Positions 2,999-35,492 of a stretch of 64,000 nucleotides of DNA are shown here, piece after piece. The notes under the pieces were generated by a model. It was not told the DNA's origin, did no database searches, and worked only from the letters and a program-made list of their open reading frames with translations. Position 1 is the first letter of the stretch. The number at the start of each line of letters is the position of its first letter. The translations under genes were made by a program, and so were the position numbers. Location of the stretch: positions 214,989-278,988 of IMG/VR virus record IMGVR_UViG_3300047322_001237; one strand, 5' to 3'.

Positions 2999-3358
2999 AT
3001 GGAGCGCGGTCCCGTAGTGCTCAACTCCTCCGACGTGCAGCTGGCGCTGCGCGACTGCTACGAAACCGCGTACCACATCTACGACCATTCGCGATCCGGG
3101 CCGAACGACACGCTCGCGCTGGTCGCAATGCGGGATGCGGAAGATAGTTCGTCGGGTGGTCTTCTGTACGAGCAGATTCGGCGATTCGAAGAGCGGCAAG
3201 TCTACAAGCACTTCGGTCTGAACCTGGTCCAGTTCCTTGAGCTGCCGTCAGACATCGTGCGGTTCGTTCTGGAAATGTCGCTCAAGCGTCAGCAGAACAC
3301 CGCGAAGACGCAGGAAGACGTGGTGGATGAAATCCAGCGTATGGCGGAGGGACAATGA
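2999..3358 (+). CDS. small phage protein, possible tail-assembly-chaperone-like
   Basis: 119 aa. YKHFGLNLVQFLELP resembles the short helical chaperone-type partners that follow hub-like genes. Stop overlaps the next start (ATGA). Confidence 0.5.
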   Translation: MERGPVVLNSSDVQLALRDCYETAYHIYDHSRSGPNDTLALVAMRDAEDSSSGGLLYEQIRRFEERQVYKHFGLNLVQFLELPSDIVRFVLEMSLKRQQNTAKTQEDVVDEIQRMAEGQ

Positions 3359-3801
3359 TCGAGCAGGTTGCAGTGCAAGACATTTTCACTTCTGCCTGTC
3401 AGGCGCTGATTGTGCCGGTGAACGTAGTGGGTACAATGGGCAAGGGTTTGGCGAAAGCCTTCGCTCAGCGGTATCCAGGACTCGAAGCAGCGTATCGAGA
3501 TGCGTGTCGCCGGCGAGTGTTTTCAAACCACGGGCTGTTTGTCTGGGAAGCAGGGGACGGGAAACTGATCGTCTGCTTTCCCACCAAGCGTCACTGGGCT
3601 AACCCATCTCGACTTCCATGGATCGACGAAGGTCTAAAACGACTGGCGCGCGACTTCGAAAAGTATCAGATCCGGTCTATCGCGATGCCGATGATCGGAT
3701 GCGGTGAGGGTGGTCTACGTTGGGATGACGTCTATCCCTTGATCGTGGAATGGCTCGAACCGGTGGAACTGCGAGTGCGAGTATGTCTATCGCCGCGGTG
3801 A
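3355..3801 (+). CDS. macrodomain ADP-ribosylhydrolase (DarG-macro-like)
   Basis: Motifs PVNVVGTMGKGLA, CFPTKRHW and SIAMPMIGCGEGGLRW match DarG-type macrodomains. Confidence 0.88.
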   Translation: MIEQVAVQDIFTSACQALIVPVNVVGTMGKGLAKAFAQRYPGLEAAYRDACRRRVFSNHGLFVWEAGDGKLIVCFPTKRHWANPSRLPWIDEGLKRLARDFEKYQIRSIAMPMIGCGEGGLRWDDVYPLIVEWLEPVELRVRVCLSPR

Positions 3802-3827
3802 AACCAAAAAAGAAGGAAGGTCATATC

Positions 3828-3856
3828 GGGAGGGCACGAGCCCTCCCTTTATGCCG
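3828..3856 (+). terminator. hairpin GGGAGGGC-ACGA-GCCCTCCC followed by TTTATGCCG
   Basis: Perfect 8-bp stem just after the macrodomain operon, with a T-rich run further downstream. Confidence 0.7.
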
Positions 3857-4140
3857 TCTTCTCTTTTTCATTACTTCATTGCCACGACTGCACGCTGCGA
3901 TGCCATGTCGTGACCGACGTGGTCCGCAACCACGAGGCTAAGGCCACCGAGGATGAAGAACATCGTGATCAGGAAGGCGCGCTTCGTCGCACCCTTGTTT
4001 GCTTTGCCCGAGTGGTAGTTGTTGTTTGCAAAGTCGATCATGATTCGCTCCGAATAGATTGGTTTTGCAATCTCACCTGTGGATTGCGTTCGGGCGAGTC
4101 ATATGTGTCTGAGAATTTCTGGAATCCTCGATTGACGGCT

Positions 4141-4149
4141 TGCTACAAT
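4141..4149 (+). promoter_or_regulatory. putative host sigma70 extended -10 promoter for the H-NS-like gene
   Basis: TGcTACAAT 24 bp upstream of the ATG at 4174, with an AGGAG RBS at 4162-4166. No good -35 element. Confidence 0.5.
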
Positions 4150-4173
4150 TTCTCTTTCCTCAGGAGTTTTGTA

Positions 4174-4500
4174 ATGGCAAGGCAACCTCGCGCGACACTC
4201 GAACAACTACGCGAACGACTGGCGACGGTGCAGGAACAAATCGCCAAGGAAGAGGAGAAGCGGCGCACGACGGCGCTTGAGGAGATTCATTCGCTGATGT
4301 TTCAGCACGGACTCACGCCGACTGACATCGAAGCGAAAGGGAAACGAGGGCCGGCGAAGAAGCAATCGAAAGCTGCTTCAAAGACGACGGTCGCGCCGAA
4401 GTATCAGGATCCGAAGACGGGCGCGACGTGGAGCGGTCGCGGTCGCGAACCGCTGTGGATCAAGGGCAAAAAGCGCGAAAAGTTTTTGATCGCGAAGTAA
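4174..4500 (+). CDS. hns: H-NS family nucleoid-associated protein (Burkholderia type)
   Basis: N-terminal coiled coil, then C-terminal PKYQDPKTGATWSGRGREPLWI (H-NS TWxGxGRxP signature). Start set at the ATG after AGGAG; the ORF track extension to 3910 is probably spurious. Confidence 0.93.
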   Translation: MARQPRATLEQLRERLATVQEQIAKEEEKRRTTALEEIHSLMFQHGLTPTDIEAKGKRGPAKKQSKAASKTTVAPKYQDPKTGATWSGRGREPLWIKGKKREKFLIAK

Positions 4501-4523: not shown

Positions 4524-5297
4524 TTACGCTGCGGGGTCCGGTTCGTCGTCAGGCGCCGGATCGTTCTTCTCCGTTTGATCCTTAATGTTCGACCCTTTCC
4601 TGCTTCTTGGTTTTGACTTCGCTTTTGATTCAGGTGCACTAGAGGACCTTTCGGAAGCGCCTGCTGACGTGCTCTCGTTCCGTGGCAGTTTCGGGACGAA
4701 ACCAAGGTAGTCGCCAATCCGCTGGCGGATACTTTCCTCCAAACCGTGGGAGAGCCCACTGGCGATTCCACAAATCACCATCCCCAATGGCACGGAAATG
4801 AGCAAGAGCATCGTGTCCTTGCCAACGATAAAGCCAGCATACGCGCCAATTGCCGAACCGGAGGCACGCACTAAATTTTCTAATGAGATGCTGCTAAGTG
4901 GGGAGCTTTCGAATGGAACAATGCTCTCGTAAGACAAGTAATTCACAAACTCCATGGCATGTCCGTAGTTGACCTCTCGAAGAGATCTAGACTCATGTAT
5001 GACATCCCTTAATGCTTTCCTTGGGTCGAGTCCCTTCAAGGGTTGGTCAGCATTAGGATTTGTGATCTCTTTGAAATAGTCGAAACGCCCAATTAGGGCT
5101 CTTTTTTGCCAGTCGAGGCGGTACCGCTTCAGCTCCACGTTTTCATCCCGAATCGGTCGGACGAAACCCTCAGGAAAGCACCGCTGCGGAACGCTGAACA
5201 AATGCGCAGACAGACCACTTTCTTCGTCGTAGATCGTGGTCTCGTAAAACTGAGGCTTCCGATAAAACTTGGGCGTGCCCGGTTGTTCATCAGTCAT
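4524..5297 (-). CDS. hypothetical membrane-associated protein (AT-richer cargo)
   Basis: 257 aa, with a hydrophobic Gly-rich stretch (GSAIGAYAGFIVG...LLLISVPLGMVICGIASGL) and a charged disordered tail. Confidence 0.6.
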   Translation of the reverse strand: MTDEQPGTPKFYRKPQFYETTIYDEESGLSAHLFSVPQRCFPEGFVRPIRDENVELKRYRLDWQKRALIGRFDYFKEITNPNADQPLKGLDPRKALRDVIHESRSLREVNYGHAMEFVNYLSYESIVPFESSPLSSISLENLVRASGSAIGAYAGFIVGKDTMLLLISVPLGMVICGIASGLSHGLEESIRQRIGDYLGFVPKLPRNESTSAGASERSSSAPESKAKSKPRSRKGSNIKDQTEKNDPAPDDEPDPAA

Positions 5298-5339
5298 GGC
5301 GACGAATCCCCCTAGGTAATCGACTTCACATAAATGAAA

Positions 5340-5642
5340 TCAACTCTCTCCAAACGATCTCGCGAGCTTTTCCCATCGCCGCTGCAACAGGTCGATCACT
5401 TTTTGGTTACGCTCTCGCCCGACCGTTGCCATCTCGAAATACTCTTCGATCGATGCTTCCACCTTGGCCGGATCGTCCCCAACGATCTGATGCCAGGGGC
5501 CGACGTAGGCCACGATCAGGCTGTCATGGAAGATGCAGCGCCCGATCGCCGCGCCAGCGGACATTACGAAGCCTTCATAATGACACCCCTTGAGAGGCCG
5601 TCCGTCGGCGGGCAGGTTTCGAAAATGCAGTTCCACCTTCAT
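5340..5642 (-). CDS. hypothetical protein
   Basis: 100-aa ORF of globular composition; no recognisable family. Confidence 0.5.
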   Translation of the reverse strand: MKVELHFRNLPADGRPLKGCHYEGFVMSAGAAIGRCIFHDSLIVAYVGPWHQIVGDDPAKVEASIEEYFEMATVGRERNQKVIDLLQRRWEKLARSFGES

Positions 5643-6234: not shown

Positions 6235-6471
6235 CTACACGCGGTAGCCATGGGAGGCTAGCAGTTCCCCGATATTCGCCCCTTCCCACGAGCCGGGCCG
6301 ACTGTGCACCATGGCGGCGTCTTCCGCGAGCATGACGAGCAACGCCTTAGCGTCCAGTGGTCCGTGGGTAGTCGCGCCGTCGCGCTGCTTGTTCACAACG
6401 CTGCATGCTTCGGCGACCATGACCAAGCCGCGGTAGACGTCGTCTCTAAGCTCCATCTCGATCTTGACCAT
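6235..6471 (-). CDS. hypothetical protein
   Basis: 78-aa ORF with GAGG upstream. Confidence 0.55.
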   Translation of the reverse strand: MVKIEMELRDDVYRGLVMVAEACSVVNKQRDGATTHGPLDAKALLVMLAEDAAMVHSRPGSWEGANIGELLASHGYRV

Positions 6472-6530
6472 CGGTGCCTCCGCTGCGGGTATCGGCTTTG
6501 CTGCGGGCAGATTATCAGAGGGAGGTCGTC

Positions 6531-7028
6531 ATGTGCTACGGAAAACCAGAAGAGCTACTTGCTCAGCTTTTGCAAGCGCGGCCATTGAAGCCAAACCAGT
6601 ACGGCCATACCGCGCTGGAAGACTTCGAGCATTTCTGTGCTTACTCGGGGTGCGACCCGAATAACACTTGGGCTAAGCTAGCCTTCGTAACAGCGAGTCT
6701 TCCACCATCAACCCCGAAGGGCCATGCCATGAGCGAAGAACTCGAAAAACAGTGCGCTGACATTAGCATGCTCCTGCGCGATCATCCGCCCGGAACAACG
6801 GCCGACATCGCGGAGTTTTGTATCGTTTATTGGGACGGCGACAGACTCGTCGGTGCGCATCTGTCCGCGGATCACCCGGGCCAACCAGACGAGCCATTTG
6901 ACGTCGACGAGGTGTTGTCAGAGATTCCGGAATGCGTCGACGAATGGCTGAAGGCACCGAAGTACTCCTTCAGGCCGACAATCGTCGAATGGATGAAGGA
7001 CTCGCCGCCGCGTGAATCGGGGGCGTGA
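6531..7028 (+). CDS. hypothetical protein
   Basis: ATG at 6531 after GGAGG. A second in-frame ATG near 6729 suggests a possible two-domain or fused ORF. Confidence 0.55.
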   Translation: MCYGKPEELLAQLLQARPLKPNQYGHTALEDFEHFCAYSGCDPNNTWAKLAFVTASLPPSTPKGHAMSEELEKQCADISMLLRDHPPGTTADIAEFCIVYWDGDRLVGAHLSADHPGQPDEPFDVDEVLSEIPECVDEWLKAPKYSFRPTIVEWMKDSPPRESGA

Positions 7029-7034: not shown

Positions 7035-7676
7035 GTGAGCCTGCCGATAATCGAGCCGGGCGACATGATGCACGGCGTGCGAGTACGCGCGCCCTTCTCT
7101 CGCGATGGCTGGATCTTTGAGATCAAATACGACGGGTATCGCGCCTTTATCCGCAAGCAAGCTGACCGCGTCGAACTTCTATCTCGCCACGGCACGGTCA
7201 TGAATGCAGTCTTTCCGGACATCATCGAGGCCGTTAGCGCGGTGCCCGGAAACTTCATTTGGGACGCCGAGCTCACGGTCGACGAGAGTAACGGACGTTC
7301 TTCGTTCGAGGGCCTTCAACAGCGAGGGCGCTTACGCGTTCCGATGCGTGTCCGTGCAGCCGCGCGCGAGCGCCCTGCCCGTCTCTACGTCTTCGATATC
7401 CTCGCCTCCGAAGATGACGACCTACGACAACTCCCGCTCGACCAACGAAAGGAAATCCTCAGAGACACGTTCGATGACAACTCGGTGCTGATCTACGCAG
7501 GGGGAATCATCGGCGCCGGTGAATGGGTCTTCGAGCAGGCGCAGAAACTCGACCTCGAGGGCGTCATGGCGAAACGCCTCGACTCGCTCTACGTGGCGGG
7601 TCGCTCCCATGCATGGCAGAAGGTCAAGAACCTAGACTACAGCCGCCCTGCTGCTCTCGGTATCGGTCGCCGGTAA
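7035..7676 (+). CDS. ATP-dependent DNA ligase, adenylation domain only (LigD/LigC-like)
   Basis: Motif I EIKYDGYR, YVFDIL, EGVMAKR and WQKVK. Ends at 213 aa without an OB domain. Confidence 0.88.
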   Translation: MSLPIIEPGDMMHGVRVRAPFSRDGWIFEIKYDGYRAFIRKQADRVELLSRHGTVMNAVFPDIIEAVSAVPGNFIWDAELTVDESNGRSSFEGLQQRGRLRVPMRVRAAARERPARLYVFDILASEDDDLRQLPLDQRKEILRDTFDDNSVLIYAGGIIGAGEWVFEQAQKLDLEGVMAKRLDSLYVAGRSHAWQKVKNLDYSRPAALGIGRR

Positions 7677-7678
7677 CA

Positions 7679-8392
7679 CTACGCGCCGGTCGCCGCGAGG
7701 ATCGATTGCATCGCCGTTGGCGCAAGCGTCCTCGCAGGCTTGCTGGAACGTCCATAGGGACTGAGCAAGATCGGCGACGGCTTCAGTGCTAAATCGAAAG
7801 GCTCGACACCGATGGGACCTTTTCGCTTCACGATGTTGACCGAGACGCCGTCGGCTGCTGGCCGGATGGCGAGTCGCAGCGACGCGGGCGATGTGTCCTG
7901 CTGCACGGCAAGCGGACGGAAAACGAAAAACAGCATCTCCGACGACTGCGAGACCAGTAACAGACGCCGCAGCGATTCGGGACGCATGTGCTGCTGCCAC
8001 AGTAAGACCGCCCCGCATGTATTCGCCTTCAGTATCTGCTCAGTCGACCAGAGCACGTCCGCCGTCTTTTCGACCTCCAGCCGAATCAACTTCTCCGGCG
8101 GAACGCCGATATACGCGAGTCCCTGGACGTTCGGAACATGTGGCGGTTTGATTAATACAACAGGCCGTTTCGCCACCGTGGTCAGCGCCGGCTGCAACAT
8201 GCGCACTTCGCCGATCCCTGGCTGTTGGACTAGCAGTTCGACCAAGGTGCCAATCGGCCACCCCCCGCCAGGCAATTCCGCCGATAGCCGGTCGTAGCCG
8301 GTGTCGACCGTGCGCCCTGCCCTTCTTGCCAACTGGTTACCGCGCCAGAGGGACGGGTGGATTTCTTCAATGTCCTTGGGAAGTGCTGACAT
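7679..8392 (-). CDS. imuA: translesion synthesis-associated protein ImuA (RecA/SulA-like)
   Basis: HPSLWRG, TGYDRLSAELPGGGWPIGTLVELL and PASLRL are typical ImuA segments. Start set at ATG 8392, downstream of the SOS box. Confidence 0.88.
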   Translation of the reverse strand: MSALPKDIEEIHPSLWRGNQLARRAGRTVDTGYDRLSAELPGGGWPIGTLVELLVQQPGIGEVRMLQPALTTVAKRPVVLIKPPHVPNVQGLAYIGVPPEKLIRLEVEKTADVLWSTEQILKANTCGAVLLWQQHMRPESLRRLLLVSQSSEMLFFVFRPLAVQQDTSPASLRLAIRPAADGVSVNIVKRKGPIGVEPFDLALKPSPILLSPYGRSSKPARTLAPTAMQSILAATGA

Positions 8393-8407: not shown

Positions 8408-8423
8408 CTGTATAGATGTACAG
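8408..8423. promoter_or_regulatory. LexA (SOS) box
   Basis: CTGT-ATAGATGT-ACAG is an exact CTGT-N8-ACAG, 15 bp upstream of the imuA ATG. Confidence 0.9.
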
Positions 8424-8908
8424 TATCCTACACCCTTTTTCGCGGCGCATCGTCTACCACTTAGGGAACCGCTTGGAGAGACAGTTAGTTGCGTGGTGAA
8501 AACCACAAAAAACGTATCATTCATTACGTTTTGGCGCCGTGACTGTCTGCCAACCTCGGCCGACTTCCGGATCACGTCAAAGAACGCTTGCCAGCGGCCA
8601 CTTAGTTCTTTTTCCGTGAAACATTCCCCGCGAGCTGCCGCCGACGCCTTGATTTAGAACAAGTTGGCGCCTTCGAAAATTTGTCCCGAGTGTTTCACGG
8701 GACGTCATTCGAACTTAAGACTACTTCGAGGTTCCACGCCCTCTTCCCCGCCCTGCTTGACCGACAAAAAGTGACAGTACAGCGAAGTATACTTGCTCTG
8801 CCCTTGTTTACAAGCTAGAGTTCGACACAATTCGGTCGTGCGCCGCATTCTTCGGTCGAAGGTGATTTTTCGAAAAACCGAAGAATCCACAACAAAGGGG
8901 AACCTCTC

Positions 8909-10111
8909 GTGAATGCAAGCACTCTGCTCGCCAGCGGCCTGCCGCCGGCGCTTGACTACGCCGCGTCCATGGACACATTGGCTGATGTGTCCGCCCGTGC
9001 CTCGGGTGTTCTAAATCAGATCCGCGATCGGATGCTGGAACCATATCCGCGCAAACGCCCGCCCACGTTCACGAGCGCACAGGTGGCCGGCCTGTGCGGA
9101 CTTGAAAAAATGCGTTTCCAGTATCTGACTACGAAAGGCGATCTCCCCACCGGCACGTCGATTAAAAATGGCAAGAGCAAAGTCTTTACGTTGGAAGAGA
9201 CACTACGGTATATCCGGGCTGTCGGCAATCGCCCGCCGCGACCAGAGAACGCTCCCGGCAAAGTTGTGACGGTGGCCAACTTCAAAGGCGGTGTGGCTAA
9301 GACTACGACGGCCGTCTCGCTCGCTCAGGGACTCACCTTACGCGGTCGTAAGGTTCTCGTTATCGACTGTGATCCCCAAGGCACCGCTACGCAGTTATGC
9401 GGCTTCTCGCCCGAAACGGAAATAGGCGAGGAGATGACGCTCATGCCTTTGATCTACGGCGATGAAACGAGACTGGACTACGCAGTCCAACAAACCTACT
9501 GGCAGGACCTAGACCTGGTCCCGGCGTCTTCCGGTCTCTTTAGCGCTGAGTTTCATATTCCGGGCAAGCTGGCCACCGACCACAAGTTCGAATTCTGGAA
9601 CATCTTGAATCAGGGCCTCGAAGGCCTCAAAGACAAATACGACGCCATCGTCATCGACACTCCGCCATCTCTAAGTTATCTGACGATCAATGCGTTGATG
9701 GCGGCGAACGGACTATTGATGCCCTGCCCGCCCGAGGGGCTCGACTTTGCCAGCTCCACTCAGTTCTGGTTCCTCTTCACCGAAATGTCGAGGCACGTTC
9801 CAGCAATGCGTGAGACGAAAGACTTCGATTTCGTCAATGTCGTGCTCACGAAATCGAAGAGTGACGACCTTTCCGGCGTTGTACGGGGCTGGCTGCAAAA
9901 GGCCTACGGAGATCGAGTCCTTCCGTATGAGATTCCCGACTCCGTCGTCCCGAAGAGCGCATCTGCTCAACTCTCTACCGTCTACGACCTTACCAAGCCC
10001 GAGGGCAGCGTGGCAGCCTACACCCGCTTCAAGGATCCGATGGATCAGTTGGTGAGGCACATCGACTCCCAGTTTGTACAGGCTTGGGCGTCTTCCATGT
10101 TGGAGGTCTAA
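8909..10111 (+). CDS. parA: type Ia plasmid partition ATPase
   Basis: N-terminal HTH extension, deviant Walker A KGGVAKTTT, DCDPQG and IDTPPSL. The start may be the ATG at 8969. Confidence 0.95.
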   Translation: MNASTLLASGLPPALDYAASMDTLADVSARASGVLNQIRDRMLEPYPRKRPPTFTSAQVAGLCGLEKMRFQYLTTKGDLPTGTSIKNGKSKVFTLEETLRYIRAVGNRPPRPENAPGKVVTVANFKGGVAKTTTAVSLAQGLTLRGRKVLVIDCDPQGTATQLCGFSPETEIGEEMTLMPLIYGDETRLDYAVQQTYWQDLDLVPASSGLFSAEFHIPGKLATDHKFEFWNILNQGLEGLKDKYDAIVIDTPPSLSYLTINALMAANGLLMPCPPEGLDFASSTQFWFLFTEMSRHVPAMRETKDFDFVNVVLTKSKSDDLSGVVRGWLQKAYGDRVLPYEIPDSVVPKSASAQLSTVYDLTKPEGSVAAYTRFKDPMDQLVRHIDSQFVQAWASSMLEV

Positions 10112-11106
10112 TGCGCGCCGCTCAAAGACTTAGTGAAAAGATTGGTGACATCGACATCCCAGAACCCGGTCAATCGCCGGCGGCCGGTGATCCGTTTCGT
10201 CCAAGGACGGCACCAGGTGGAGCGCTCGCCTTTCAGCATGCAATGCGCGAGAAGCAGGCCGAGCTCGACGCGATGTCCGCACAGCTGGCCGAACTGCAAG
10301 CTCAGAAGCAGACGAACTCGCCCAGCGGCGTCGAGATTCCCCTCGACCAACTGCATGAAGTCGCAGGTCGCAGACGCTACATGCCGCCGGAAAAGTACAA
10401 TGAATTGCGGGAAAACCTGCGGAACAACAAGCTGATTCAGCTGCCCGTCATTCTGCCACGTGCAGAAGGTGGCTTCGAAATACAGTCGGGACATCACCGG
10501 ATCGACGCTTATCGGGAACTCGGGCGTTCGACCATTCGCTGTGTTCTGGGTGACGCGACGGGCGATGAAGCTGACGACGGCGCGTTCTGGGCCAATCTGA
10601 TGCAGTCGGACCTGACTGACTATGAGAAGTACGTTGGACTGACGCGCGTACATTCGAAACATCCGGAATTGGGCCAAGTCGAGCTAGGCGAGCTCGTCGG
10701 CATTAGCACTTCCCACCTCAACGCCCTGCTCTCTTTCGGTCGTTTGCCTGAGCAGGCCCGCGCGATTCTCGATACCAATAAGGCGATCATGGGCGCGAAC
10801 GCGGCCGCGGCTTTTGCGGCTATCGCGGAGGCCGGCAAGGCGGAGCGGGTTGTGGAAGCGGTACGACGTCTCTCCGAGCGGGAGCTAGATCAGGCGCAGG
10901 CGGTGAAGTTTGCAAAAGCCGTTGAGACGCCCAAGGCAACGAAGCCGGCTGCTGAGTCGTACAAGGTGAAGACCGGAAAGAGTACGTGGTGCGATGTGCG
11001 CAAGACGAAAAACATCATGCGCATCGAGTTCCAGTCCGAAGAGGTGGCCAATGCCGTCCAAGAAGCCATCAAGCAAACCCTCGAGGCGCTCGCCGCAAAG
11101 TCCTAA
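10111..11106 (+). CDS. parB: ParB/Spo0J partition protein
   Basis: GHHR (GxxR CTPase motif) and a central HTH. TAATG overlap with the parA stop. Confidence 0.92.
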   Translation: MRAAQRLSEKIGDIDIPEPGQSPAAGDPFRPRTAPGGALAFQHAMREKQAELDAMSAQLAELQAQKQTNSPSGVEIPLDQLHEVAGRRRYMPPEKYNELRENLRNNKLIQLPVILPRAEGGFEIQSGHHRIDAYRELGRSTIRCVLGDATGDEADDGAFWANLMQSDLTDYEKYVGLTRVHSKHPELGQVELGELVGISTSHLNALLSFGRLPEQARAILDTNKAIMGANAAAAFAAIAEAGKAERVVEAVRRLSERELDQAQAVKFAKAVETPKATKPAAESYKVKTGKSTWCDVRKTKNIMRIEFQSEEVANAVQEAIKQTLEALAAKS

Positions 11107-24619: not shown

Positions 24620-24621
24620 TA

Positions 24622-28017: not shown

Positions 28018-28021
28018 TACA

Positions 28022-29140
28022 TCACCTCACTTCGTTGATTTTCTGTTGTGCAATGGCGATCATGTCCGCCGAGACACCCATGGCCTGCAGGCGCTCGGAG
28101 AGCAGTTCGACAATGTTTTCGCGTGTGATCGTGATAGGCACGAACTCCACCGTTCCTTCTTCCAGCGCGGGCGCCTCCACTTCATCCGCGTCCTTCGGGT
28201 TCTTGCTCCAGACGAACTGGGGATAGATCCGCATCAACGCATCCATATCTGCAAACAGCGGATGGTCGTAGTTCGCCTCCAGGCGGACCGCCGAGTTATC
28301 GGGCAAATGCTTCACACGACGCTCGATCTCAAGCAGCGAGTCCTCGACCGACATGTGCATGCAGTACACCGTGATGAACTTGCGCGCGCCCGTGTTCTCG
28401 ACGAAAACGACATCGCGATCGCCGTTCGGACGAAACGTTGCGCGGAAGTGACCCTTCGGTTCTTCTTCGCCGTGGCCGAGACGATCGAAGGAGCCTTGGG
28501 CGTAGATCCACTTGTAGGTCGACTGGATATGAACGTGTCCGATGAAAACGCCCATGCGCGTGATCCGGAGATACGCTTCCGAGTCATGCTTCTGTGCTTT
28601 CACGTGGGGCGGGAGCTGATACTCGAATTGCCCGTGCATGAACATCAGATCTACCTGTTCGAGTCCTTTCGCTCGGAGCAGGTCGTAGATTTGGCTAAGA
28701 GTTTGGTCTGTTGTCGGCGCACTCTCATCGGGTACGAACCCAACCCAGATGTCCAGGGAGGGTTCGTACTCGACGGAAATGTCTTTAACATATTTGAGAT
28801 TAGCGCCAATGCCTGCGATCTCATTGATAGAGACGAACCGCTCCGACTGTCGCCAATCGTGACTCGGCGTCCCCTCGAGGACGTAGAGCACGATGTCGTG
28901 CTTTTTGCACAGGCGCAGCAGGTGAGCGATCCAGAAATCGATCTCTACCAAATCTTCGTCATTCAACGACAACAACGTATCGAACACGTCGCCCACGAGG
29001 CAGATCATGTCGAGTTCGGCCGTCTCCGCGTTATCCGGGAAGGCGGCCTTCAGGTTCTTGATGATGTCACGCGTCGGTGTGCGCTTTGCACCCAGATGGA
29101 TGTCGCTCACCGTCGCGATCTTGAGGTCAGAAGTCCTCAT
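28022..29140 (-). CDS. SbcD/Mre11-like metallophosphoesterase nuclease
   Basis: SDIHLG, GDVFD, GTPSHD, MHG and GHVH calcineurin-like motifs. Confidence 0.9.
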   Translation of the reverse strand: MRTSDLKIATVSDIHLGAKRTPTRDIIKNLKAAFPDNAETAELDMICLVGDVFDTLLSLNDEDLVEIDFWIAHLLRLCKKHDIVLYVLEGTPSHDWRQSERFVSINEIAGIGANLKYVKDISVEYEPSLDIWVGFVPDESAPTTDQTLSQIYDLLRAKGLEQVDLMFMHGQFEYQLPPHVKAQKHDSEAYLRITRMGVFIGHVHIQSTYKWIYAQGSFDRLGHGEEEPKGHFRATFRPNGDRDVVFVENTGARKFITVYCMHMSVEDSLLEIERRVKHLPDNSAVRLEANYDHPLFADMDALMRIYPQFVWSKNPKDADEVEAPALEEGTVEFVPITITRENIVELLSERLQAMGVSADMIAIAQQKINEVR

Positions 29141-29756
29141 ACTCGGGCTCGTCTCCCTGTGTCGATGCCGGTCCCGTCGCTTGCGCGGGAGCAGCGGCCG
29201 CTGCTTGTTCCGCCGCGAAAAGAGGAGGGCGACCGTACCGCGTCAGGATCTCGTTCCACACCACAGCATGTTTGTGGAGCTTGTCGCTCGTGTTCATGAT
29301 CGACGCGCGCTGACCCAAAACGTTGCGCAAATAATTCACACCCGCCATTGGGTGCAGATGCGAGTACTGATCCGCCAGCTTCACGACATCCTGAATCGGC
29401 GTTTGCCGCCGGTCCGCTGGATCGCGGACCGGGTTCACCCCCTGGTAGTCAAACAGGGGAGGTACCCGGAACAGCACTTTGTCGGTGCCCGGTTCGAACA
29501 CGTCGACGGATTTGTACGGTGTGCCGGCAATCGAGATCCAGTCAGCAACCGTGACCTTGTGCGGAAGTTCCTCGTCGCCGGCGAGGAGGGGCAGGAAGAC
29601 TTTCGAGAAGATGTCTTCCGGCAGACGCGCAACATCTTGCGATGCGATGACGTTGAGGCTGGCCGCGATCGTGTTGATGAAGTTCGCCTGGCCCTCGTCA
29701 CGACCGTACGTCGCGCGAGCGCGCGCTGCCTGAAACTTGTTCGCGGGCTGGTTCAT
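29127..29756 (-). CDS. conserved phiKZ-like hypothetical protein
   Basis: 209-aa ORF overlapping the nuclease start; phage-core codon style. Confidence 0.7.
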   Translation of the reverse strand: MNQPANKFQAARARATYGRDEGQANFINTIAASLNVIASQDVARLPEDIFSKVFLPLLAGDEELPHKVTVADWISIAGTPYKSVDVFEPGTDKVLFRVPPLFDYQGVNPVRDPADRRQTPIQDVVKLADQYSHLHPMAGVNYLRNVLGQRASIMNTSDKLHKHAVVWNEILTRYGRPPLFAAEQAAAAAPAQATGPASTQGDEPEYEDF

Positions 29757-29767
29757 GCGCGGACTCC

Positions 29768-30370
29768 TTAGTCAGCTGCGGGCGTCGGACCGTCAGAGAT
29801 ACCGGCCGCTTTGGGTTGCGACTTGGCGTAGCCGTTAGGATCTTCGAAAGCCTCGACGACGTTCGGCCTGAGAACGGTGAAGTACAGGAACTGCATGTTG
29901 CGCAACTGCAGCGCATGAGCTTGTCGCTTGAGCTCGGCTGCGATGGCAGGCGACGGCGTCTGCGGGATGTTCTCGTACGCGAAGCGGCCGCGTTCCTGAT
30001 AACAGAAGAGCTTGAAGTCGACGACAGCAACATCGTCGGGCTGCTGACCCATCATGGCGTCGTCGCCGTTCTCGAAGATCGGCGTGTAGACGATCACGAA
30101 GCAGTTATCTACCGCAATCGGGAACACCGTCTGAACGATGATCGAGCCGTCCTGCATCAGGTGCGGCTTGGTCAGCACTTCACTGGGTTTCAGTGCATGC
30201 GGCAGCTTGCGAAAGTCGAGGTACTCGTGTTGTTCGAAGTGGACGACGTCGAGGATCGACTTGTTGATTCGGCGGAACAGGCTTTCGAGCCATGCCGGTG
30301 CTTGGTTCGGGGTGGGCACCTCTTCGAACGCGGGACCCGGGGACGTGATGGGTTTGATGTCGGAGATCAT
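29768..30370 (-). CDS. hypothetical protein
   Basis: 200-aa ORF; start overlaps the upstream stop (ATGA). Confidence 0.7.
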   Translation of the reverse strand: MISDIKPITSPGPAFEEVPTPNQAPAWLESLFRRINKSILDVVHFEQHEYLDFRKLPHALKPSEVLTKPHLMQDGSIIVQTVFPIAVDNCFVIVYTPIFENGDDAMMGQQPDDVAVVDFKLFCYQERGRFAYENIPQTPSPAIAAELKRQAHALQLRNMQFLYFTVLRPNVVEAFEDPNGYAKSQPKAAGISDGPTPAAD

Positions 30371-30801
30371 GATGCTTGTTGGATGACGTTGGCTGCTACC
30401 GACTGTCCGGTGTTGTTCAAATTTACGGCTTTGATGAACTTGGAATTACTTGCCTGGATGAGTCCCGAATACGGGTACGTCACGCCGTCCTCAGTGACCT
30501 GCGCGTAAACCATCAAAGTCACGAGGCTCGTACCGTCGCTGTTGTCGCTTGCCACCTGAACGGTCGCGGCGTCGTAATAGCGATTGAGGTACGTTTCCAT
30601 CGCGACCTGAATGGCCTGACAGGTTCCCGGGATGTCACCAGCGTTCTGCTCAATCACTTTCTGAATGCTGGTGATGTTCCCTGGGTACGTGTACGTCTGG
30701 TTGCTCATCGACTCGTAGATGTGCGCCATCAACAAGTCGGCTTTCTGCTGCGGCGAAACAACCCAACCTGCAGTAGAAAGAGACGGCACGGGAGTTGGCA
30801 T
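30367..30801 (-). CDS. conserved phiKZ-like protein, possibly gp25-like baseplate fold
   Basis: 144 aa, VPSLSTAGWV...YLNRYYD. The fold assignment is inference. Confidence 0.55.
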   Translation of the reverse strand: MPTPVPSLSTAGWVVSPQQKADLLMAHIYESMSNQTYTYPGNITSIQKVIEQNAGDIPGTCQAIQVAMETYLNRYYDAATVQVASDNSDGTSLVTLMVYAQVTEDGVTYPYSGLIQASNSKFIKAVNLNNTGQSVAANVIQQAS

Positions 30802-30922
30802 GATTGGGGCTCACAGTATCAAAGGAAGACATAAAATCTGCCCATCGATACCGTCGACCAAGCAAAAAATAAAGGAGTACGAAGGCACGCCCGGAAGACT
30901 TTCATCTCCCGGACTTACCTTC

Positions 30923-31543
30923 TTACAGCCTTTCGTTCCACTTCGAAGTCGGATCGTCCTGACCAATCTCGACATACGCGCGGATCACGTCGTGAGTGTT
31001 GAGGATGTCTGCCTTCTCCTCGAACTCCAGCTCGCGATCGCCTTCGTGAATCTCGTCAAGATAGTGATGAACGACCCAGCCACCGTCTTCCGTATCCTCC
31101 ACCACGCCGTGATGAATCCTGCGCCAATCGTAATGCTCCACACCACGACGACCCGGCTCGACGTCGAAGTACGTCTGCGAGTAACCATCGCATCGCTGCT
31201 GGTGATAGAGCGTACGCACATCTTCCTGCGCCATAATCCAGCGCTGCATCGTGAGCGGGGCATGCTGCAACCGACCCAGATCCCAGATGCTCTGGATCCT
31301 GTCGCTCATGAACAAGCTATCGAACTTACGCGTCGCTGCTCGCGCAATCCGCATTGCTTCCGAACTGTTGAAGCTGTCGTACAGATGCTTCGCCGAGTTG
31401 AAGAACGCCTGACCGAACTCCGTCAACGCTCCGCTGAACTGCTGCACCTGGTTCTCCAGAAACGCGAGGGTGCCCGGATGCTTCTGGGCGCCATACACGA
31501 GACTGTTGAACGTCTGGGTATTACCCTGAACGATCATTACCAT
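30923..31543 (-). CDS. conserved phiKZ-like hypothetical protein
   Basis: 206-aa ORF directly downstream of the beta' N-terminal subunit. Confidence 0.7.
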   Translation of the reverse strand: MVMIVQGNTQTFNSLVYGAQKHPGTLAFLENQVQQFSGALTEFGQAFFNSAKHLYDSFNSSEAMRIARAATRKFDSLFMSDRIQSIWDLGRLQHAPLTMQRWIMAQEDVRTLYHQQRCDGYSQTYFDVEPGRRGVEHYDWRRIHHGVVEDTEDGGWVVHHYLDEIHEGDRELEFEEKADILNTHDVIRAYVEIGQDDPTSKWNERL

Positions 31544-31556
31544 TTCTCACCTCGCG

Positions 31557-33086
31557 TTAATGAATAGCCGGAACCGGTTCCGCAGCCGGCGGCGCTTCGG
31601 GAATCGCTGCCATGCGACGCAGAACTTCCGGATCGGCTTGTTCCGGTTCGTCCCAGTGAATCCAGTTGCTGATCGTCGCGATCACGGTCTTGGGCATCGA
31701 CAGATTGCGCGACACGGTACGCGGTGCGTTCATGTCGAACACGCTCTGATGCGGTGCCAGTCGATACAGCTCTTCGGCCGTCACGAAGTCGAGCGACAAC
31801 GTTGCGTTGAGCTGGTCGCCGTCGAAGTCCGCGTTGAAGCCGACCACCGACAGAATGCTCATCGAGATCGTCGGGATCGCCGGTTCGCTCTTCACCTTCG
31901 TGATGAACATGGCCTGCGCCGATGAACGCGCCAGCGACGGATTGCGTTGCAGCACGATCGGGACGCCCTTGTACGGGGAACGCTCGATGAAGTCGTGGAA
32001 CATCTGGTCGAGCATCGGACAGTACTTCGCCGCGTGGTCGAGCAGGTACGCATCCGCTTCCGACGGCGTCATGCCTTGACGCATCATGCGGTTCTTCAGA
32101 TGCAACTCGAACACGGCAATGCCGATGCCCCACGGGATGTGAACTTCGTCGTAGTCGTGGCGATCCGTGAGCGAACTGATCACCGCACGGAAGCTGAAAT
32201 GTGCCCGCGTACCATAGACGTGCTTGCGGAAGATGCCTTCCTTCTTCGCCAGCACCGTGCGCATCGTCTCGTCGTAATACTGCGACGTCTGGATGATCAT
32301 CTTGATCGTGCGGTTCTCTTTCACTCGTTCGGAGTGGACGGAGAGCGGCGCGTCAATGCCGACCATCATCAGAATCGCGTCCACAGCAACAGGAGCGGTC
32401 GCGTCCGTGTACGAGCCGTGATTCGTGTCTTCCAACACGAGCAGTGAACGGTTCGGCAGCGGCAGGTATTTCGAGAAGACGCAATCGCGCTGTTCTTGCA
32501 GCAGCTGCTTGAGCGGAGCGAGCTTCTTCTTGCTGTAGAACTTCAGATTGAACATGAAGTCCATGATCTGATCGAAGTTCTCGACGAAGTTGTTGTAGCC
32601 GCGCGGGATGTTCGCCTTGCGGATGTAGTCCATCACAGGCGGCTCTTTCACGGTCGCCTTGTAATTGACGTCGACGATCCAGCGCATCACGTCGAAGTTG
32701 CTCTTCTCGAAGCGCTCCGCGATCATCGTCCAGACCGTCGGATTGATCAGGGCCGTGACACCCTTCGGTGCGCGCAGCCAAATCAGCGGTTCGAGATCGC
32801 GCTGATGCGGTGCCGTCACTTCGGTGTGGCAGTCCGGGCATTCCACGGCCTTGATGTACTTCCCGTCACCGAGCTTATCGACGCCGACCGTGTTGCCGCA
32901 GTCACACGAGGGGATGTTCGAGAGCAGATCCGAGTTGATCAGATCGTACTTCGTGAAAATCAGGTTGTAGATGTGTTCTTTTTCCTCTTCGGAAGTATCC
33001 GAGAGGTCGTTGATGATGATCGGTTCCTTGGACGAGAAGTGATTGAACACTTCGTCTTGGTTCACGAGTTGGAGGAATACGCCCAC
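31557..33086 (-). CDS. non-virion RNA polymerase beta' N-terminal/catalytic subunit (phiKZ gp55-like)
   Basis: Catalytic NADFDGD motif, Zn-finger CDCG...CPDC and QRNPSL; immediately downstream of chimallin. Confidence 0.95.
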   Translation of the reverse strand: MGVFLQLVNQDEVFNHFSSKEPIIINDLSDTSEEEKEHIYNLIFTKYDLINSDLLSNIPSCDCGNTVGVDKLGDGKYIKAVECPDCHTEVTAPHQRDLEPLIWLRAPKGVTALINPTVWTMIAERFEKSNFDVMRWIVDVNYKATVKEPPVMDYIRKANIPRGYNNFVENFDQIMDFMFNLKFYSKKKLAPLKQLLQEQRDCVFSKYLPLPNRSLLVLEDTNHGSYTDATAPVAVDAILMMVGIDAPLSVHSERVKENRTIKMIIQTSQYYDETMRTVLAKKEGIFRKHVYGTRAHFSFRAVISSLTDRHDYDEVHIPWGIGIAVFELHLKNRMMRQGMTPSEADAYLLDHAAKYCPMLDQMFHDFIERSPYKGVPIVLQRNPSLARSSAQAMFITKVKSEPAIPTISMSILSVVGFNADFDGDQLNATLSLDFVTAEELYRLAPHQSVFDMNAPRTVSRNLSMPKTVIATISNWIHWDEPEQADPEVLRRMAAIPEAPPAAEPVPAIH

Positions 33087-33193
33087 CGTGTTCTCCTTGC
33101 TTGGTGCAACTGCTTGATTGGGGATCGTGTTGCTACGTTGCTGCTTACGATTGCTGGGGGAAATAAAATTCGCCTTGCAATCTATTCACGGTA

Positions 33194-33201
33194 GTGATAT
33201 A
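33194..33201 (-). promoter_or_regulatory. putative early promoter motif TATATCAC
   Basis: 107 bp upstream of the beta' N-terminal start; context AGTGATATATCGCC. Confidence 0.55.
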
Positions 33202-33431
33202 TCGCCAAGTTTCGTTTCAACCGTCTGGAAACCGGCGTCATCTGCGATGCTTAAGGCTGCACCGACTTCTCCTCCTCAGGCGTCTCATCGAGGAGCGCGA
33301 CGTTCGAGGAGGTGCCGCGAAGGAGCCAAGCAATCGTGATTGCCAACACCAACCAACCTGCACCAAACAACATCCAAGCGTTCATCTTGTTTCTCTTATT
33401 GCTCGCGGTGGTCTATCCGCGTTGCATGAAC

Positions 33432-33481
33432 CAAAAAAAAAATACGGCATAAAGAGAGGGGAGAGGGCTTTCGCCCCCTCC
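33432..33481 (-). terminator. chimallin terminator: GAAA-loop hairpin + TTATGCCG + T10
   Basis: Minus strand: GGAGGGGGC-GAAA-GCCCTCTCC ... TTTATGCCGTA followed by ten Ts. Confidence 0.85.
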
Positions 33482-33524
33482 GCTCAAACTGCACCTCGCA
33501 TGAGCGAGGCGCAGGCACTACTGC

Positions 33525-35492
33525 TTACTGGTTGGACCAGCGGCTGAAGCCAGCGCGGGCGCCGTACTGCTGTTGTTGCGGGTGCGCGAAGCCGCGGTTG
33601 AACACCGAGCCGTTCATCGAGCCCGTATCCAGACCAGCCGACACTGCGTACGGGTTCACCGCGCGCTCGTACTGGTTCAGATCCGTCATCGGGGCGATGG
33701 TGCGCACCGACAGACCCGTGTCCTTGCATGCGTTCAGCAGCGCGACGATGAACGCCGGCTCGAAAGTCACGCGGCGTGCGAAGCCGGTGAACTCGACGTT
33801 GTTCTTGCCGAGGATGCCTTCGATGATGTGCTTGCGCTTCGCCAGACGAACTTGCAGGTCCAGGTTCGTGCGTGCGAACGTATCCGACCATTCGCGTGCA
33901 ACTTCCGGATCGCGATCGCCGACCATGTTGAGCACGGCCAGGTAGTCGATCTCGCGGAGGTCGCGCTTCACGCCGTGACGGTCGACGTACCAACCCAGGT
34001 GGATGCGGTTGAATTCGTCGGACGCCACGCGGCCGCCGGCCTGGAAGTAACGGCTGAAGTTGCCGTGCGTGAGCACGTTCGCCGCGCGGATGATGATTTC
34101 ATTCGCTTTCTGCCAGTTGTTGCCGCTCAGCTCAGCAGCTGCTGCGAAGATGCCGTTGAACCAGGTCTGCGGACCGCACTCGGGCACGTCCAGCGAGAGG
34201 ATGAGCTTCGGCGTGATGACCGAGCCAACCAGACGCAGGAGGTGGTCGCTCGTCTGACCTTGACCGCGCTGGAACGCATCCGACTTCGTGTCGACGCGCG
34301 AGCCGAAGCCGTTCGGGTTCTTCTCGAAGTTCGCTTCGATGCCGATGGCGCCGATGTCCTTCCAGTCGATTTCCGCGCTGTTGCTCATCGGTGCCGGACG
34401 GAATGCCTCGACCCATGCGTGGTTGTCGGCCAGCGTGAACGCCGTCACGAGCGCCAGCAGCTGCGCCGGAATCGTGAGCAGCTTGACCGACTCGAGATCG
34501 GTCATCACGAAACGCGGACGGTAGCGCTTGAACTCGTCCGGCGACGACGGCTGAGCCGTCTGCTGGACCCACGGGTCGAAGCGTTGCGTCTGCTGTTCGG
34601 TCGGCGCCCACACGAGGTCCATGTAGCCGCTGATGCGCGAGATCTGCGACACACGCTGGGTCACGCCTTGCTGGCCCGGGATTTCCTGCCCGCCTGCGCG
34701 GAAGTCGATGACGATGTCCGAACGGATCGGTGCGCCGACCATGTCACGCGACTGGCCGTTGCCGAACGTCGGCTGAACGGTCAGCGAGTTCTCTTGCTCG
34801 ACGGTGCCCAGGTCCAGGTCCTGGAAGCCGCCCGGCTGACGCACTTCGAGTTCGGTCTGGCACGCCGTTGCAGCGTTCGCTGCCAGCTCGTGAACCAGCG
34901 TCACGTCGTCGACGTTGAAGTCACGCGGCACCACGCATGCGTCCACCGGCCAAATCGGCATGCCCGGGAACGTGCGCGACACGGCGGCGAGCACTTCGTC
35001 CGACAGCGTCTTGTTGTTGACGTCGCCGGTCACGCGCAGGATTTCCGTGTTCGTGTTGTTGATCATCTGGTACGCGACCTGCAGCGGCTCGCTCGAGCCT
35101 TCCAGAATCAGGGTGTGACATGCCACGCCCGTTTCCTTGTTCATCAGGTCACGCATCGCGACGACGATCACCGACTTCACGAGCGACTGCGTGTTGTTGT
35201 AGTCGATCGGGATGAGCGTGACTTCGTAGCTCTTGTCGACGCCGGCGAACACTTCGGTCAGTGCCTTCTCGAGTTTCGTGATGACTTCGCTCTGCGGATT
35301 GCGACCCATGGCGGCACGCGAGAGGCTGCCCAGGTCGGACAGGCGGGTGCGTTGCGTCGGGCGCTGCGCTGCGCTCGGGGCGGCTTGCTGCTGGGCTTGC
35401 GCCGACTGCTCCATCTGACGGCTGAATGCAGCGCCCATCGAGGTTTCTGCTGCTGCGCCTTGCTTGCTGCCGTTGGTGTTGTTCACTGCCAT
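33525..35492 (-). CDS. chmA: chimallin, phage nuclear shell protein
   Basis: 655 aa directly upstream of the NADFDGD subunit. Segments FVMTDLE, LSLDVPECGPQTW, IDYLAVLN and GFARRVTFEPAFIVAL match my recollection of ChmA; disordered termini. Confidence 0.85.
   Translation of the reverse strand: MAVNNTNGSKQGAAAETSMGAAFSRQMEQSAQAQQQAAPSAAQRPTQRTRLSDLGSLSRAAMGRNPQSEVITKLEKALTEVFAGVDKSYEVTLIPIDYNNTQSLVKSVIVVAMRDLMNKETGVACHTLILEGSSEPLQVAYQMINNTNTEILRVTGDVNNKTLSDEVLAAVSRTFPGMPIWPVDACVVPRDFNVDDVTLVHELAANAATACQTELEVRQPGGFQDLDLGTVEQENSLTVQPTFGNGQSRDMVGAPIRSDIVIDFRAGGQEIPGQQGVTQRVSQISRISGYMDLVWAPTEQQTQRFDPWVQQTAQPSSPDEFKRYRPRFVMTDLESVKLLTIPAQLLALVTAFTLADNHAWVEAFRPAPMSNSAEIDWKDIGAIGIEANFEKNPNGFGSRVDTKSDAFQRGQGQTSDHLLRLVGSVITPKLILSLDVPECGPQTWFNGIFAAAAELSGNNWQKANEIIIRAANVLTHGNFSRYFQAGGRVASDEFNRIHLGWYVDRHGVKRDLREIDYLAVLNMVGDRDPEVAREWSDTFARTNLDLQVRLAKRKHIIEGILGKNNVEFTGFARRVTFEPAFIVALLNACKDTGLSVRTIAPMTDLNQYERAVNPYAVSAGLDTGSMNGSVFNRGFAHPQQQQYGARAGFSRWSNQ

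Follow-up and report, generated by a model that had tools for sequence, protein, structure and literature searches.

A plasmid-type partition and replication cassette conserved at one site in a sub-clade of chimallin-encoding jumbo phages

Phage-plasmids such as P1, N15, phiKO2 and the SSU5-like forms are temperate phages of 40-110 kb that combine a phage genome with ParA/ParB and a replication protein, possess defined repressors, rely on host RNA polymerase and exchange their maintenance genes with plasmids (Pfeifer & Rocha, PMC10879196). A jumbo-sized counterpart is pBtic235, a circular prophage-plasmid of Bacillus thuringiensis (PMC9700832). In contrast, all characterized chimalliviruses, the nucleus-forming jumbo phages, are treated as lytic, and a review of these phages does not discuss a temperate or plasmid state (PMC12908238). 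Chimallin-encoding jumbo phage genomes (Goslar-like, Seoulvirus) have nevertheless been found as contigs in assemblies of cultured isolates, and the authors describing these "persistent virulent" phages searched them for plasmid replication and partition genes but recovered none, only lone ParB hits (bioRxiv 10.1101/2024.12.31.630880; PMC12768965). Here we describe a chimallivirus genome in which a parA-parB-rep cassette of the type seen on Burkholderiaceae plasmids is embedded between conserved phage genes. We suggest that this phage lineage probably persists as a plasmid, a state that is not known for this phage family.

A complete chimallivirus genome

The window analyzed, 64,000 nucleotides in length, constitutes the last 64 kb (positions 214,989 to 278,988) of the 278,988-bp metagenome contig IMGVR_UViG_3300047322_001237. 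This contig closes on itself, as indicated by an exact 127-nt overlap of its ends and by a DUF7193 gene (PF23823; 62913..64000, minus strand), of which the C-terminal part (profile positions 510-845 of 847) lies in the window and whose frame stays open for 871 codons across the junction into the contig start. Such a circular assembly, however, is also expected for a terminally redundant, headful-packaged lytic phage. All the genes named in the initial annotation are present, and its underlying observation is real. Chimallin (ChmA), the phage nucleus shell protein, is encoded at 33525..35492 (minus strand; PF25677, E 3e-48, 165 bits against a cut-off of 27), and is 44% identical to its counterpart in Burkholderia phage FLC9 and 26-30% identical to proteins annotated as nuclear shell proteins in RSL2, RP12 and Goslar. 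A core operon (16710..33086, minus strand), collinear with FLC9 gp369-381, encodes on separate ORFs the β-like (18753..21002, minus strand; PF00562) and β'-like (31557..33086, minus strand; PF00623) subunits of split multisubunit phage RNA polymerases, the virion and non-virion sets not being distinguished. The window further encodes a phage DNA polymerase of the divDNApol family (40355..42523, minus strand; precomputed PF20286 assignment) and a PhuZ-like tubulin (49226..50326, minus strand), the latter recovered with PF00091 at 33.9 bits against a cut-off of 33 and with the phage tubulin C-terminal domain PF22334 at 26.0 bits, just under its cut-off of 27. No integrase was detected among the window ORFs that we scanned.

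To the left of the point at which the plasmid-type genes appear, three phage core genes encoding proteins of 259, 529 and 119 aa (534..3358, plus strand) are homologous to and syntenic with FLC9 gp359-361; the 529-aa protein is 44% identical to its FLC9 homolog, 91% identical in a sister phage and 70% identical in a phage of Paraburkholderia sp. BCC1886 (see below for both). They are followed by a stand-alone DarG-like macrodomain gene (3355..3801, plus strand; Pfam Macro E 5e-12, PADLOC DarG E 8e-47), which has two paralogs in FLC9, is present next to the 529-aa gene in many distant chimalliviruses, and is the last conserved phage gene on this side. The first conserved core gene on the right is a helicase (15114..16643, minus strand) with a weak ResIII match, 41% identity to FLC9 gp368 and homologs in 39 IMG/VR chimallivirus contigs.

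Gene content and cis elements of the island

Between the macrodomain and helicase genes lies an island of about 11 kb. Its left edge is marked by a GC-rich hairpin followed by TTTATGCC (3826..3853, plus strand), a phage-wide terminator/TATG promoter-like element. The initial annotation had placed elements of this type at 3828, 13392 and 14454; we recovered them at 3828 (plus strand), 13392 (plus strand) and, with one stem mismatch, 14454 (minus strand), and further copies occur at 51367, 57692 and 58836. The early-promoter motif that had also been invoked (TTATATCAC, on the minus strand at 13356 and 14406) is not more frequent than chance, with 8 matches against 3.8 expected and 6 of 100 shuffles reaching 8. 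The first island gene encodes an H-NS family protein of 108 aa (4174..4500, plus strand; PF00816, E 3.5e-13), its real start being 4174 rather than 3910, which is conserved in the sister phage (62%) and the BCC1886 phage (49%). Next is variable cargo (4524..5642, minus strand), comprising a 257-aa protein with a hydrophobic, possibly membrane-spanning stretch and a 100-aa protein; neither gave a family match and both are absent from the sister phage. A divergent pair of conserved genes (6235..7028), encoding proteins of 78 aa (minus strand) and 165-184 aa (plus strand), also gave no family match, but is 76-83% identical in the sister phage and 40% in BCC1886. An ATP-dependent DNA ligase of 213 aa (7035..7676, plus strand; PF01068, E 3e-30) is conserved in the island of all three phages.

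The adjacent, oppositely oriented gene encodes ImuA (237 aa; 7679..8392, minus strand; NF033429, E 8e-64, 215 bits against a cut-off of 150). It is preceded by a perfect LexA (SOS) box, CTGTATAGATGTACAG, at 8408..8423, 16 nt upstream of its start, which is the only CTGT-N8-ACAG match in the 64 kb and is conserved at the same position in relatives (loci L014, L057, L058 and L066). While the LexA box is as expected for an ImuA-ImuB-DnaE2 SOS mutagenesis cassette, neither imuB nor dnaE2 lies beside this imuA. Homologs occur on 378 Burkholderiaceae plasmid records, and in several of the listed hits the match also overlaps a Y-family polymerase gene (imuB-like).

The partition genes are type Ia-like. 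ParA (8909..10111, plus strand; PF13614, E 2e-37; PHROG ParA, E 7e-53) is a 400-aa protein with an N-terminal extension of ~115 aa, its Walker ATPase domain starting at residue ~118, and is 67% identical to the ParA of Caballeronia megaplasmids. ParB (331 aa; 10111..11106, plus strand) displays a ParB_N domain (PF02195/TIGR00180) and a GRRR arginine patch (AGRRR), and is 54-65% identical to plasmid ParBs. Upstream of parA (8614..8820) are conserved non-coding elements, namely the inverted pair CGTGAAACA ... TGTTTCACGG and GTTTAC repeats, with TGTTTCACG invariant across the phage and plasmid copies aligned; these are candidate operator, centromere or origin elements. The inverted pair is the only candidate for a parS centromere, but it is conserved even where ParB differs, and hence may not be parS. 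The parB-rep intergenic region (11173..11357, plus strand) is structured, with a 13-bp terminator-like hairpin (11181-11213) and further conserved stems in which 11 pairs show compensatory changes across 8 phage and plasmid copies. Three RGCTGGAAAC copies lie in or beside these stems, two of them in hairpin loops, and no Rfam family was matched.

The Rep protein (362 aa; 11358..12446, plus strand) belongs to the Burkholderiaceae plasmid "Replication protein O" family and has an N-terminal winged helix. It is 53-84% identical to the product of the gene following parAB on Burkholderiaceae plasmids, the 84% value being to the Rep next to parAB on Caballeronia conjugative plasmids, with 82-87% nucleotide identity over part of the gene. 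However, the "RepA" of the initial annotation matches no Pfam or NCBIfam Rep family, and we could find no experimentally characterized homolog. A fold search with its structural model returned only MarR-like, generic winged-helix regulators at E >= 0.014, and no iterons, DnaA-box cluster or other oriV element could be identified, which together argue against an iteron-type initiator of the Rep_3/RepA-RepE-pi kind. A bidirectional terminator hairpin (12480..12499) separates rep from the right-hand island and phage genes (12505..14949, minus strand), a hypervariable 276-aa gene that is 26% identical in the sister phage, followed by conserved genes of 176, 106 and 149 aa that are 67-91% identical; none of the four has a detectable FLC9 homolog.

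Distribution and evolution of the island

We searched for the island in related jumbo phages, as had been suggested beforehand. It lies at the same site in a sister phage from a second metagenome (IMGVR_UViG_3300046463_001154) and in a 286,074-bp contig of the cultured isolate Paraburkholderia sp. BCC1886. A third relative is present on a 143,740-bp contig of the Caballeronia arationis type strain LMG 29324, but this contig breaks before the island, and no link to a par-rep contig could be made. Among 36 + 16 more distant chimallivirus loci none has any island gene, and those whose flank reaches the macrodomain and 529-aa genes keep the helicase-macro-529-aa gene synteny. Further, Rep has no match in 50,697 phage records.

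In the three island-bearing phages the helicase and RNAP β proteins are 57-84% and 81-97% identical to each other, whereas ParA and ParB are only 44-48% identical between phages whose neighboring genes are 57-97% identical. Moreover, the three phage Reps each nest among different plasmid Reps. The cassette has therefore been replaced repeatedly with plasmid versions, yet always kept intact, and is under purifying selection (dN/dS about 0.1; 0.14 for ParA and 0.09-0.17 for Rep).

Interpretation and relation to known systems

We consider it most likely, with moderate confidence, that this is the complete, circularly closing ~278.9-kb genome of a chimallivirus, probably of a Caballeronia (Burkholderiaceae) host, which can enter a plasmid-like persistent state. 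In this view, after entry the genome would circularize and be maintained as a low-copy extrachromosomal replicon, with Rep initiating replication using host machinery and ParA/ParB segregating the copies at cell division; from this phage-plasmid or plasmid-like carrier state the normal chimallin/PhuZ/phage-RNAP lytic program would be launched at some rate or on a signal. The analysis directly establishes the gene identities, the completeness of the genome, the conservation of the island and its position, the repeated exchange of the cassette with plasmids under purifying selection and the presence of relatives in two cultured, subcultured isolates, C. arationis LMG 29324 and BCC1886 (PMC6706693), whereas actual replication and partition, stable inheritance, the silencing of lytic genes, induction and the formation of a nucleus are inferred. 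The initial interpretation of a temperate phage-plasmid, persisting as a low-copy plasmid prophage and building a nucleus only on induction, is thus supported in part: the chimallin/PhuZ/split-RNAP phage and its intact plasmid-type cassette stand, but no repressor or immunity switch, oriV or parS site was found in the window to indicate that the element is temperate, low-copy or inducible. Since chimalliviruses without any plasmid genes also turn up in isolate assemblies, presence in isolates alone is not proof of a plasmid state.

The principal alternative, which remains possible though less likely, is that the phage is obligately lytic and that the plasmid-derived island serves the infection itself, or a transient pseudolysogenic or persistent infection, without regulated plasmid lysogeny. 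Under this scenario the island might provide Rep-assisted early replication, Par-mediated positioning of phage DNA in still-dividing infected cells, interference with resident plasmids or SOS modulation through ImuA. It is consistent with the lytic character ascribed to characterized chimalliviruses, the persistence of such phages in isolates without plasmid genes, the lack of a detectable repressor in the window and the phage-type hairpin-TATG elements at the edges of the island, which suggest that part of it is read by the phage RNAP. Against it, a full partition system plus initiator with its plasmid cis elements is costly, and its repeated re-acquisition from or exchange with host-matched plasmid versions is the pattern that selection for vertical inheritance in dividing cells would produce; relatives without the island, namely FLC9 and the more distant loci that reach the junction, evidently replicate lytically without it. 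That the island is a decaying, functionally irrelevant passenger acquired from a host plasmid is unlikely: the GC3 of its genes (0.57-0.68) is lower than that of phage core genes (0.73-0.87), its rep is close to plasmid versions at the nucleotide level and its imuA is cut off from the usual partners, but all its genes are intact in three phages, the dN/dS values are low, and its position, SOS box and cis elements are conserved. An assembly chimera between a phage and a plasmid can be effectively excluded, because although the Logan contigs of SRR26076528, an independent assembly of another read set, break inside the 5' part of rep (~11370-11861), the stretch most similar to plasmids, each joins phage core genes to island genes (left flank through parB, and RNAP/helicase into rep), the same arrangement recurs in a second metagenome and an isolate assembly, and synteny with FLC9 is continuous on both sides.

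Among isolated phages the closest is FLC9 (LC667451, 321,833 bp), of an unclassified genus placed in a genome-based family with Chimalliviridae phages. Beyond the chimallin and helicase similarities noted above, its RNAP subunits are 52-56% identical, and its gene order is collinear on both sides of the island (534-3801 with gp359-362 and 15114-35492 with gp368-382), but it has only ~2.4 kb (gp363-367) where the present phage has 11.3 kb, no Rep, and no island gene in the loci compared. The cassette itself finds its counterparts in Caballeronia/Paraburkholderia plasmid replicons, such as Burkholderia sp. RPE67 p2 (AP014580) and the C. novacaledonica and C. arationis conjugative plasmids, which have the same parA-parB-[structured spacer]-rep order, the same upstream motifs and 53-84% protein identity; there it sits beside T4SS, relaxase or integrase genes, or at the record origin, whereas here it is embedded in a phage genome. 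The persistent virulent jumbo phages resemble the present lineage in occurring as contigs of cultured isolates, but differ in lacking the complete parA-parB-rep cassette conserved here, while pBtic235 is comparable in being a jumbo-sized phage maintained as a circular plasmid, but has a Gram-positive host and belongs to an unrelated phage lineage. With P1, N15, phiKO2 and the SSU5-like phage-plasmids this phage shares ParA/ParB and, as inferred from its plasmid homologs, a replication protein, with no integrase seen (here among the window ORFs scanned), and the nearest phage homologs of its ParA are those of N15, phiKO2 and POI1126; in contrast to them, it is a 279-kb chimallin/phage-RNAP/PhuZ phage from a family with no known temperate member.

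Genome closure and phage gene content

By exact-protein look-ups, the 64-kb window corresponds to positions 214,989-278,988 of contig Ga0495680_0000001 from the JGI metagenome 3300047322, the same record as IMGVR_UViG_3300047322_001237 (278,988 bp). The last 40 nt of the window recur at nt 88-127 of the contig start, and the first and last 127 nt of the contig are identical. Further, a DUF7193 gene (window 62913-64000, minus strand) stays open for 871 codons across this junction, which matches the 847-position profile of the family. Hence, the sequence is a complete, circularly closing genome of about 278.9 kb. As a circular map is expected both for a plasmid and for a terminally redundant phage, this closure points to completeness rather than to a particular lifestyle.

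Profile searches showed that this genome encodes chimallin (33525-35492, minus strand; Pfam PF25677, E 3e-48), RNAP beta-like and beta'-like fragments, a divergent DNA polymerase and a PhuZ-like tubulin. A search of phage records recovered none that is similar at the nucleotide level, and the nearest isolated phage is Burkholderia phage FLC9, with chimallin 44% identical. Window 534-3801 corresponds to FLC9 gp359-362 and window 15114-35492 to gp368-382, in the same order and with similar lengths, but FLC9 has about 2.4 kb between these two blocks where the window has 11.3 kb. The last conserved gene on the left, at 3355-3801 (plus strand), encodes a stand-alone DarG-like macrodomain (PADLOC DarG, E 8e-47) that is conserved in FLC9, as two paralogues, and in many distant chimalliviruses, and it is probably a counter-defense against DarT-type DNA ADP-ribosylation. 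A gene-free stretch of ~1.2 kb upstream of chimallin (35493-36681) has lower G+C (about 0.47-0.53) and no coding signature, and a search for repeats in it found none.

The initial annotation had described hairpin-TATG elements bracketing the plasmid-type module, and these do exist at 3828, 13392 and 14454 as well as elsewhere in phage intergenic regions, which fits an island embedded in the phage's own transcription layout. In contrast, the early-promoter motif that it had proposed could not be supported statistically. A WTATATCAC motif lies 20-110 nt upstream of several minus-strand gene starts (13356, 14406, 26227 and 33194, on the minus strand) and is a possible phage promoter element, but its count is not above chance. 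A scan for sigma-70 promoters was likewise at chance level.

A plasmid-type island with conserved non-coding elements

The island spans about 3.8-14.4 kb and contains, in order, an H-NS family protein (4174-4500), two variable ORFs, a conserved divergent pair of unknown genes, an ATP-dependent DNA ligase, ImuA (NF033429, E 8e-64), a 400-aa ParA with an N-terminal extension, a 331-aa ParB with ParB_N and an arginine patch, a structured spacer, and a 362-aa protein that we term Rep. Searches with PADLOC, PHROG, Pfam and NCBIfam returned nothing for the unknown ORFs of the island. The only CTGT-N8-ACAG box of the 64 kb lies 16 nt upstream of imuA (7679-8423 together with the box), and this perfect, conserved SOS box accompanies an imuA that stands alone, without imuB or dnaE2. 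The pairing of imuA and SOS box next to parA recurs in all three phages carrying the island and on two small contigs of Caballeronia arationis. The 276-aa gene next to rep (12505-13335, minus strand) is hypervariable, being 26% identical in the sister phage described below while its neighbors are 67-91% identical, and it shows weak similarity to TraP and Erp.

While gene prediction based on GC3 preferred opposite-strand ORFs in the Rep region, homology settles the matter in favor of Rep. It is 53% identical over its full length to the gene that follows parAB on a Caballeronia plasmid and on a B. pseudomallei plasmid, up to 67% identical to PLSDB plasmids, and 84% identical to proteins on Caballeronia contigs where parA-parB-rep lies beside T4SS genes. 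At the nucleotide level a megablast match of 82-87% identity covers window ~11175-12085, i.e. the rep gene and its leader. ParA is 67% identical to the ParA at the record origin of Caballeronia megaplasmids, whereas ParB is 54-65% identical to plasmid ParBs, with its best matches on RPE67 p2 and a Mycetohabitans plasmid. As these best matches are on different replicons, the par operon itself (8909-11106) looks mosaic. ImuA homologs sit on 378 Burkholderiaceae plasmid records, and in several of the listed hits the match also overlaps a Y-family polymerase gene. Every identifiable island gene is thus a plasmid-backbone gene of the predicted host family.

The non-coding parts are also plasmid-like. 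Upstream of parA there is a conserved inverted pair, CGTGAAACA ... TGTTTCACGG, together with GTTTAC repeats, and the parB-rep spacer (11173-11357, plus strand) folds into conserved hairpins, namely a 13-bp terminator-like hairpin plus further stems, with 11 pairs showing compensatory changes across 8 copies. Both features are shared by the phage and plasmid copies. The position of the spacer is analogous to the antisense-RNA region between repB and repC of repABC plasmids, but an Rfam search of the window and of the rep leader found no RNA family. Three copies of RGCTGGAAAC in this region at first resembled iterons; however, the alignment shows that they lie in or beside conserved hairpins, two of them in hairpin loops, one of which is a terminator-like stem, and the iteron reading was accordingly rejected. 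Searches for DnaA boxes, direct repeats and palindromes gave no origin or parS candidate above chance. Rep belongs to no curated initiator family, and a fold search with its AlphaFold model (pLDDT 78) showed a predicted N-terminal winged helix that resembles only MarR-type regulators. Its putative role as an initiator therefore rests on conserved context. Par-rep origins of Burkholderia secondary replicons have been described in general terms by Du et al. (PMC4948915), though this is a parallel rather than an established homology to those proteins.

Comparative genomics and evolution of the cassette

To ascertain if the island is genuinely linked to the phage we examined an independent assembly (Logan, run SRR26076528). 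One of its contigs runs from the left phage genes through macro, H-NS, ligase, ImuA, ParA and ParB, and another runs from the RNAP genes and helicase through the small genes into rep, such that each side of the island is independently tied to phage core genes. Both contigs stop inside the 5' part of rep (~11370-11861), the stretch with 82-87% nucleotide identity to plasmids, and the break hence looks like a repeat shared with co-resident plasmids, suggesting that related plasmids coexist in the sampled community.

A helicase search of IMG/VR recovered 39 chimallivirus contigs, and a Rep search exactly two. The sister phage IMGVR_UViG_3300046463_001154, from a different metagenome, has the whole island at the same place, with identities to the window of 92% for macro, 62% for H-NS, 74% for the ligase, 81% for ImuA, 78% for Rep, 82% for the 176-aa gene, 84% for the helicase and 97% for RNAP beta, but only 45% for ParA and 48% for ParB. 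A scan of GTDB species genomes with an RNAP-beta alignment found two bacterial isolates. In Caballeronia arationis LMG 29324 a 143,740-bp contig has core proteins 82-98% identical but ends just before the island. In Paraburkholderia sp. BCC1886 a 286,074-bp contig has RNAP beta 81% identical, and its region reads p529 (the 529-aa protein), macro, AAA protein, H-NS, TauE, ligase, ImuA (66% identical, with its SOS box), ParA, ParB, Rep (70%), the 176-aa gene and helicase. BCC1886 (reads in run ERR3299468) is a subcultured isolate from wood-decay fungi with a genome of 62.9% G+C, against about 57% for the phage, and its genome announcement mentions neither a phage nor a plasmid (PMC6706693).

We attempted to link the C. 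arationis phage contig to one of the three parA-parB-rep contigs of that isolate, but there is no end overlap and no phage gene on FCOG02000144 (ctg144) or FCOG02000201 (ctg201). These two short contigs carry further ligase-imuA-parA-parB-rep sets, one of which may be the island of the sister phage in this isolate or a second element. The Logan assembly of SRA run ERR1448093 carries one of the C. arationis par-rep contigs. Other Rep-bearing contigs of about 55-320 kb, which were inspected as potential further jumbo phages, proved to be conjugative plasmids.

Among more distant relatives we compared 36 IMG/VR and 16 metagenome loci with helicase 29-46% identical; those whose flank reaches that far keep the helicase-macro-p529 neighborhood, and none of the 52 contains H-NS, ligase, ImuA, ParA, ParB or Rep. 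The metagenome scan found only distant relatives, at most 55% identical. Rep matches nothing among 50,697 deposited phage genomes, and chimallin matches nothing on 72,556 plasmids (PLSDB).

In a tree of 121 Rep sequences the three phage Reps do not group together; instead, each nests among different plasmid Reps, with the BCC1886 Rep being sister to that of a conjugative plasmid. Together with the par swap, this means that the cassette has been replaced repeatedly by recombination with resident plasmids, while the locus has always kept an intact cassette. Pairwise dN/dS is 0.09-0.17 for Rep and 0.14 for ParA. This is the pattern expected if host-matched replication and partition functions are under selection.

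Lifestyle inferences and relation to known systems

The observation made in the initial annotation, of a plasmid-type cassette within a nucleus-forming jumbo phage genome, is borne out by these analyses. Its interpretation as a plasmid prophage that is induced to lytic growth is only partly supported. The best explanation, which we hold with moderate confidence, is that this sub-clade of chimalliviruses can persist as a plasmid. The gene identities, the closure of the genome, the conserved island and its position, the repeated exchange of an intact cassette and the presence of relatives in cultured isolates come directly from the sequence comparisons, whereas replication and partition by the cassette, silencing of lytic genes and induction are inferred. 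No repressor was found in the window, and on sequence evidence alone 'temperate' and 'inducible' remain hypotheses. The main rival, which appears less likely but possible, is a lytic phage that uses the island during infection or in an unregulated carrier state. Recent work shows that chimalliviruses without any plasmid genes also turn up in isolate assemblies, and its authors explicitly looked for Rep and Par genes and found none; this makes the present cassette stand out, but also shows that persistence does not strictly need one. Inert passenger DNA is hard to reconcile with the pattern of selection on the cassette. An assembly chimera is ruled out by the independent linkage of both sides of the island to phage core genes.

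A bolder reading, about as likely as not, is that members of this sub-clade would be the first chimalliviruses with a genuine plasmid-prophage lifestyle, whether temperate or stably carried, in which the genome is inherited as a Rep/ParABS-driven low-copy plasmid matched to the host's own plasmid families. Chimallivirus early genes are transcribed by a virion-delivered RNA polymerase, and we speculate that a resident copy lacking that enzyme might be silent by default, apart from the island genes that may carry host-type promoters. In this view lytic genes could stay silent largely for this reason, and H-NS and an SOS-linked gene would add host-coupled control.

Nucleus-forming jumbo phages are studied, and proposed for therapy and biocontrol, as strictly lytic viruses, and a lineage that can live as a plasmid would change that picture. 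It would give a concrete mechanism for the recently reported persistence of jumbo phages in bacterial isolates, and raise the question of how a phage that normally bypasses host transcription and hides its DNA in a protein shell can be kept silent and partitioned. It would also provide a natural ~280-kb shuttle between the phage and plasmid gene pools in plant- and fungus-associated Burkholderiaceae. As the two isolates that carry relatives are a type strain (LMG 29324) and a published, cultured strain (BCC1886), the hypothesis is testable at the bench if they can be obtained. Our search of the literature found no paper describing a chimallivirus with plasmid maintenance genes, or a temperate chimallivirus. 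Jumbo phage-plasmids as such are known, for example pBtic235; hence, what is new here is the occurrence of plasmid maintenance genes in a chimallivirus, rather than a new category of element.
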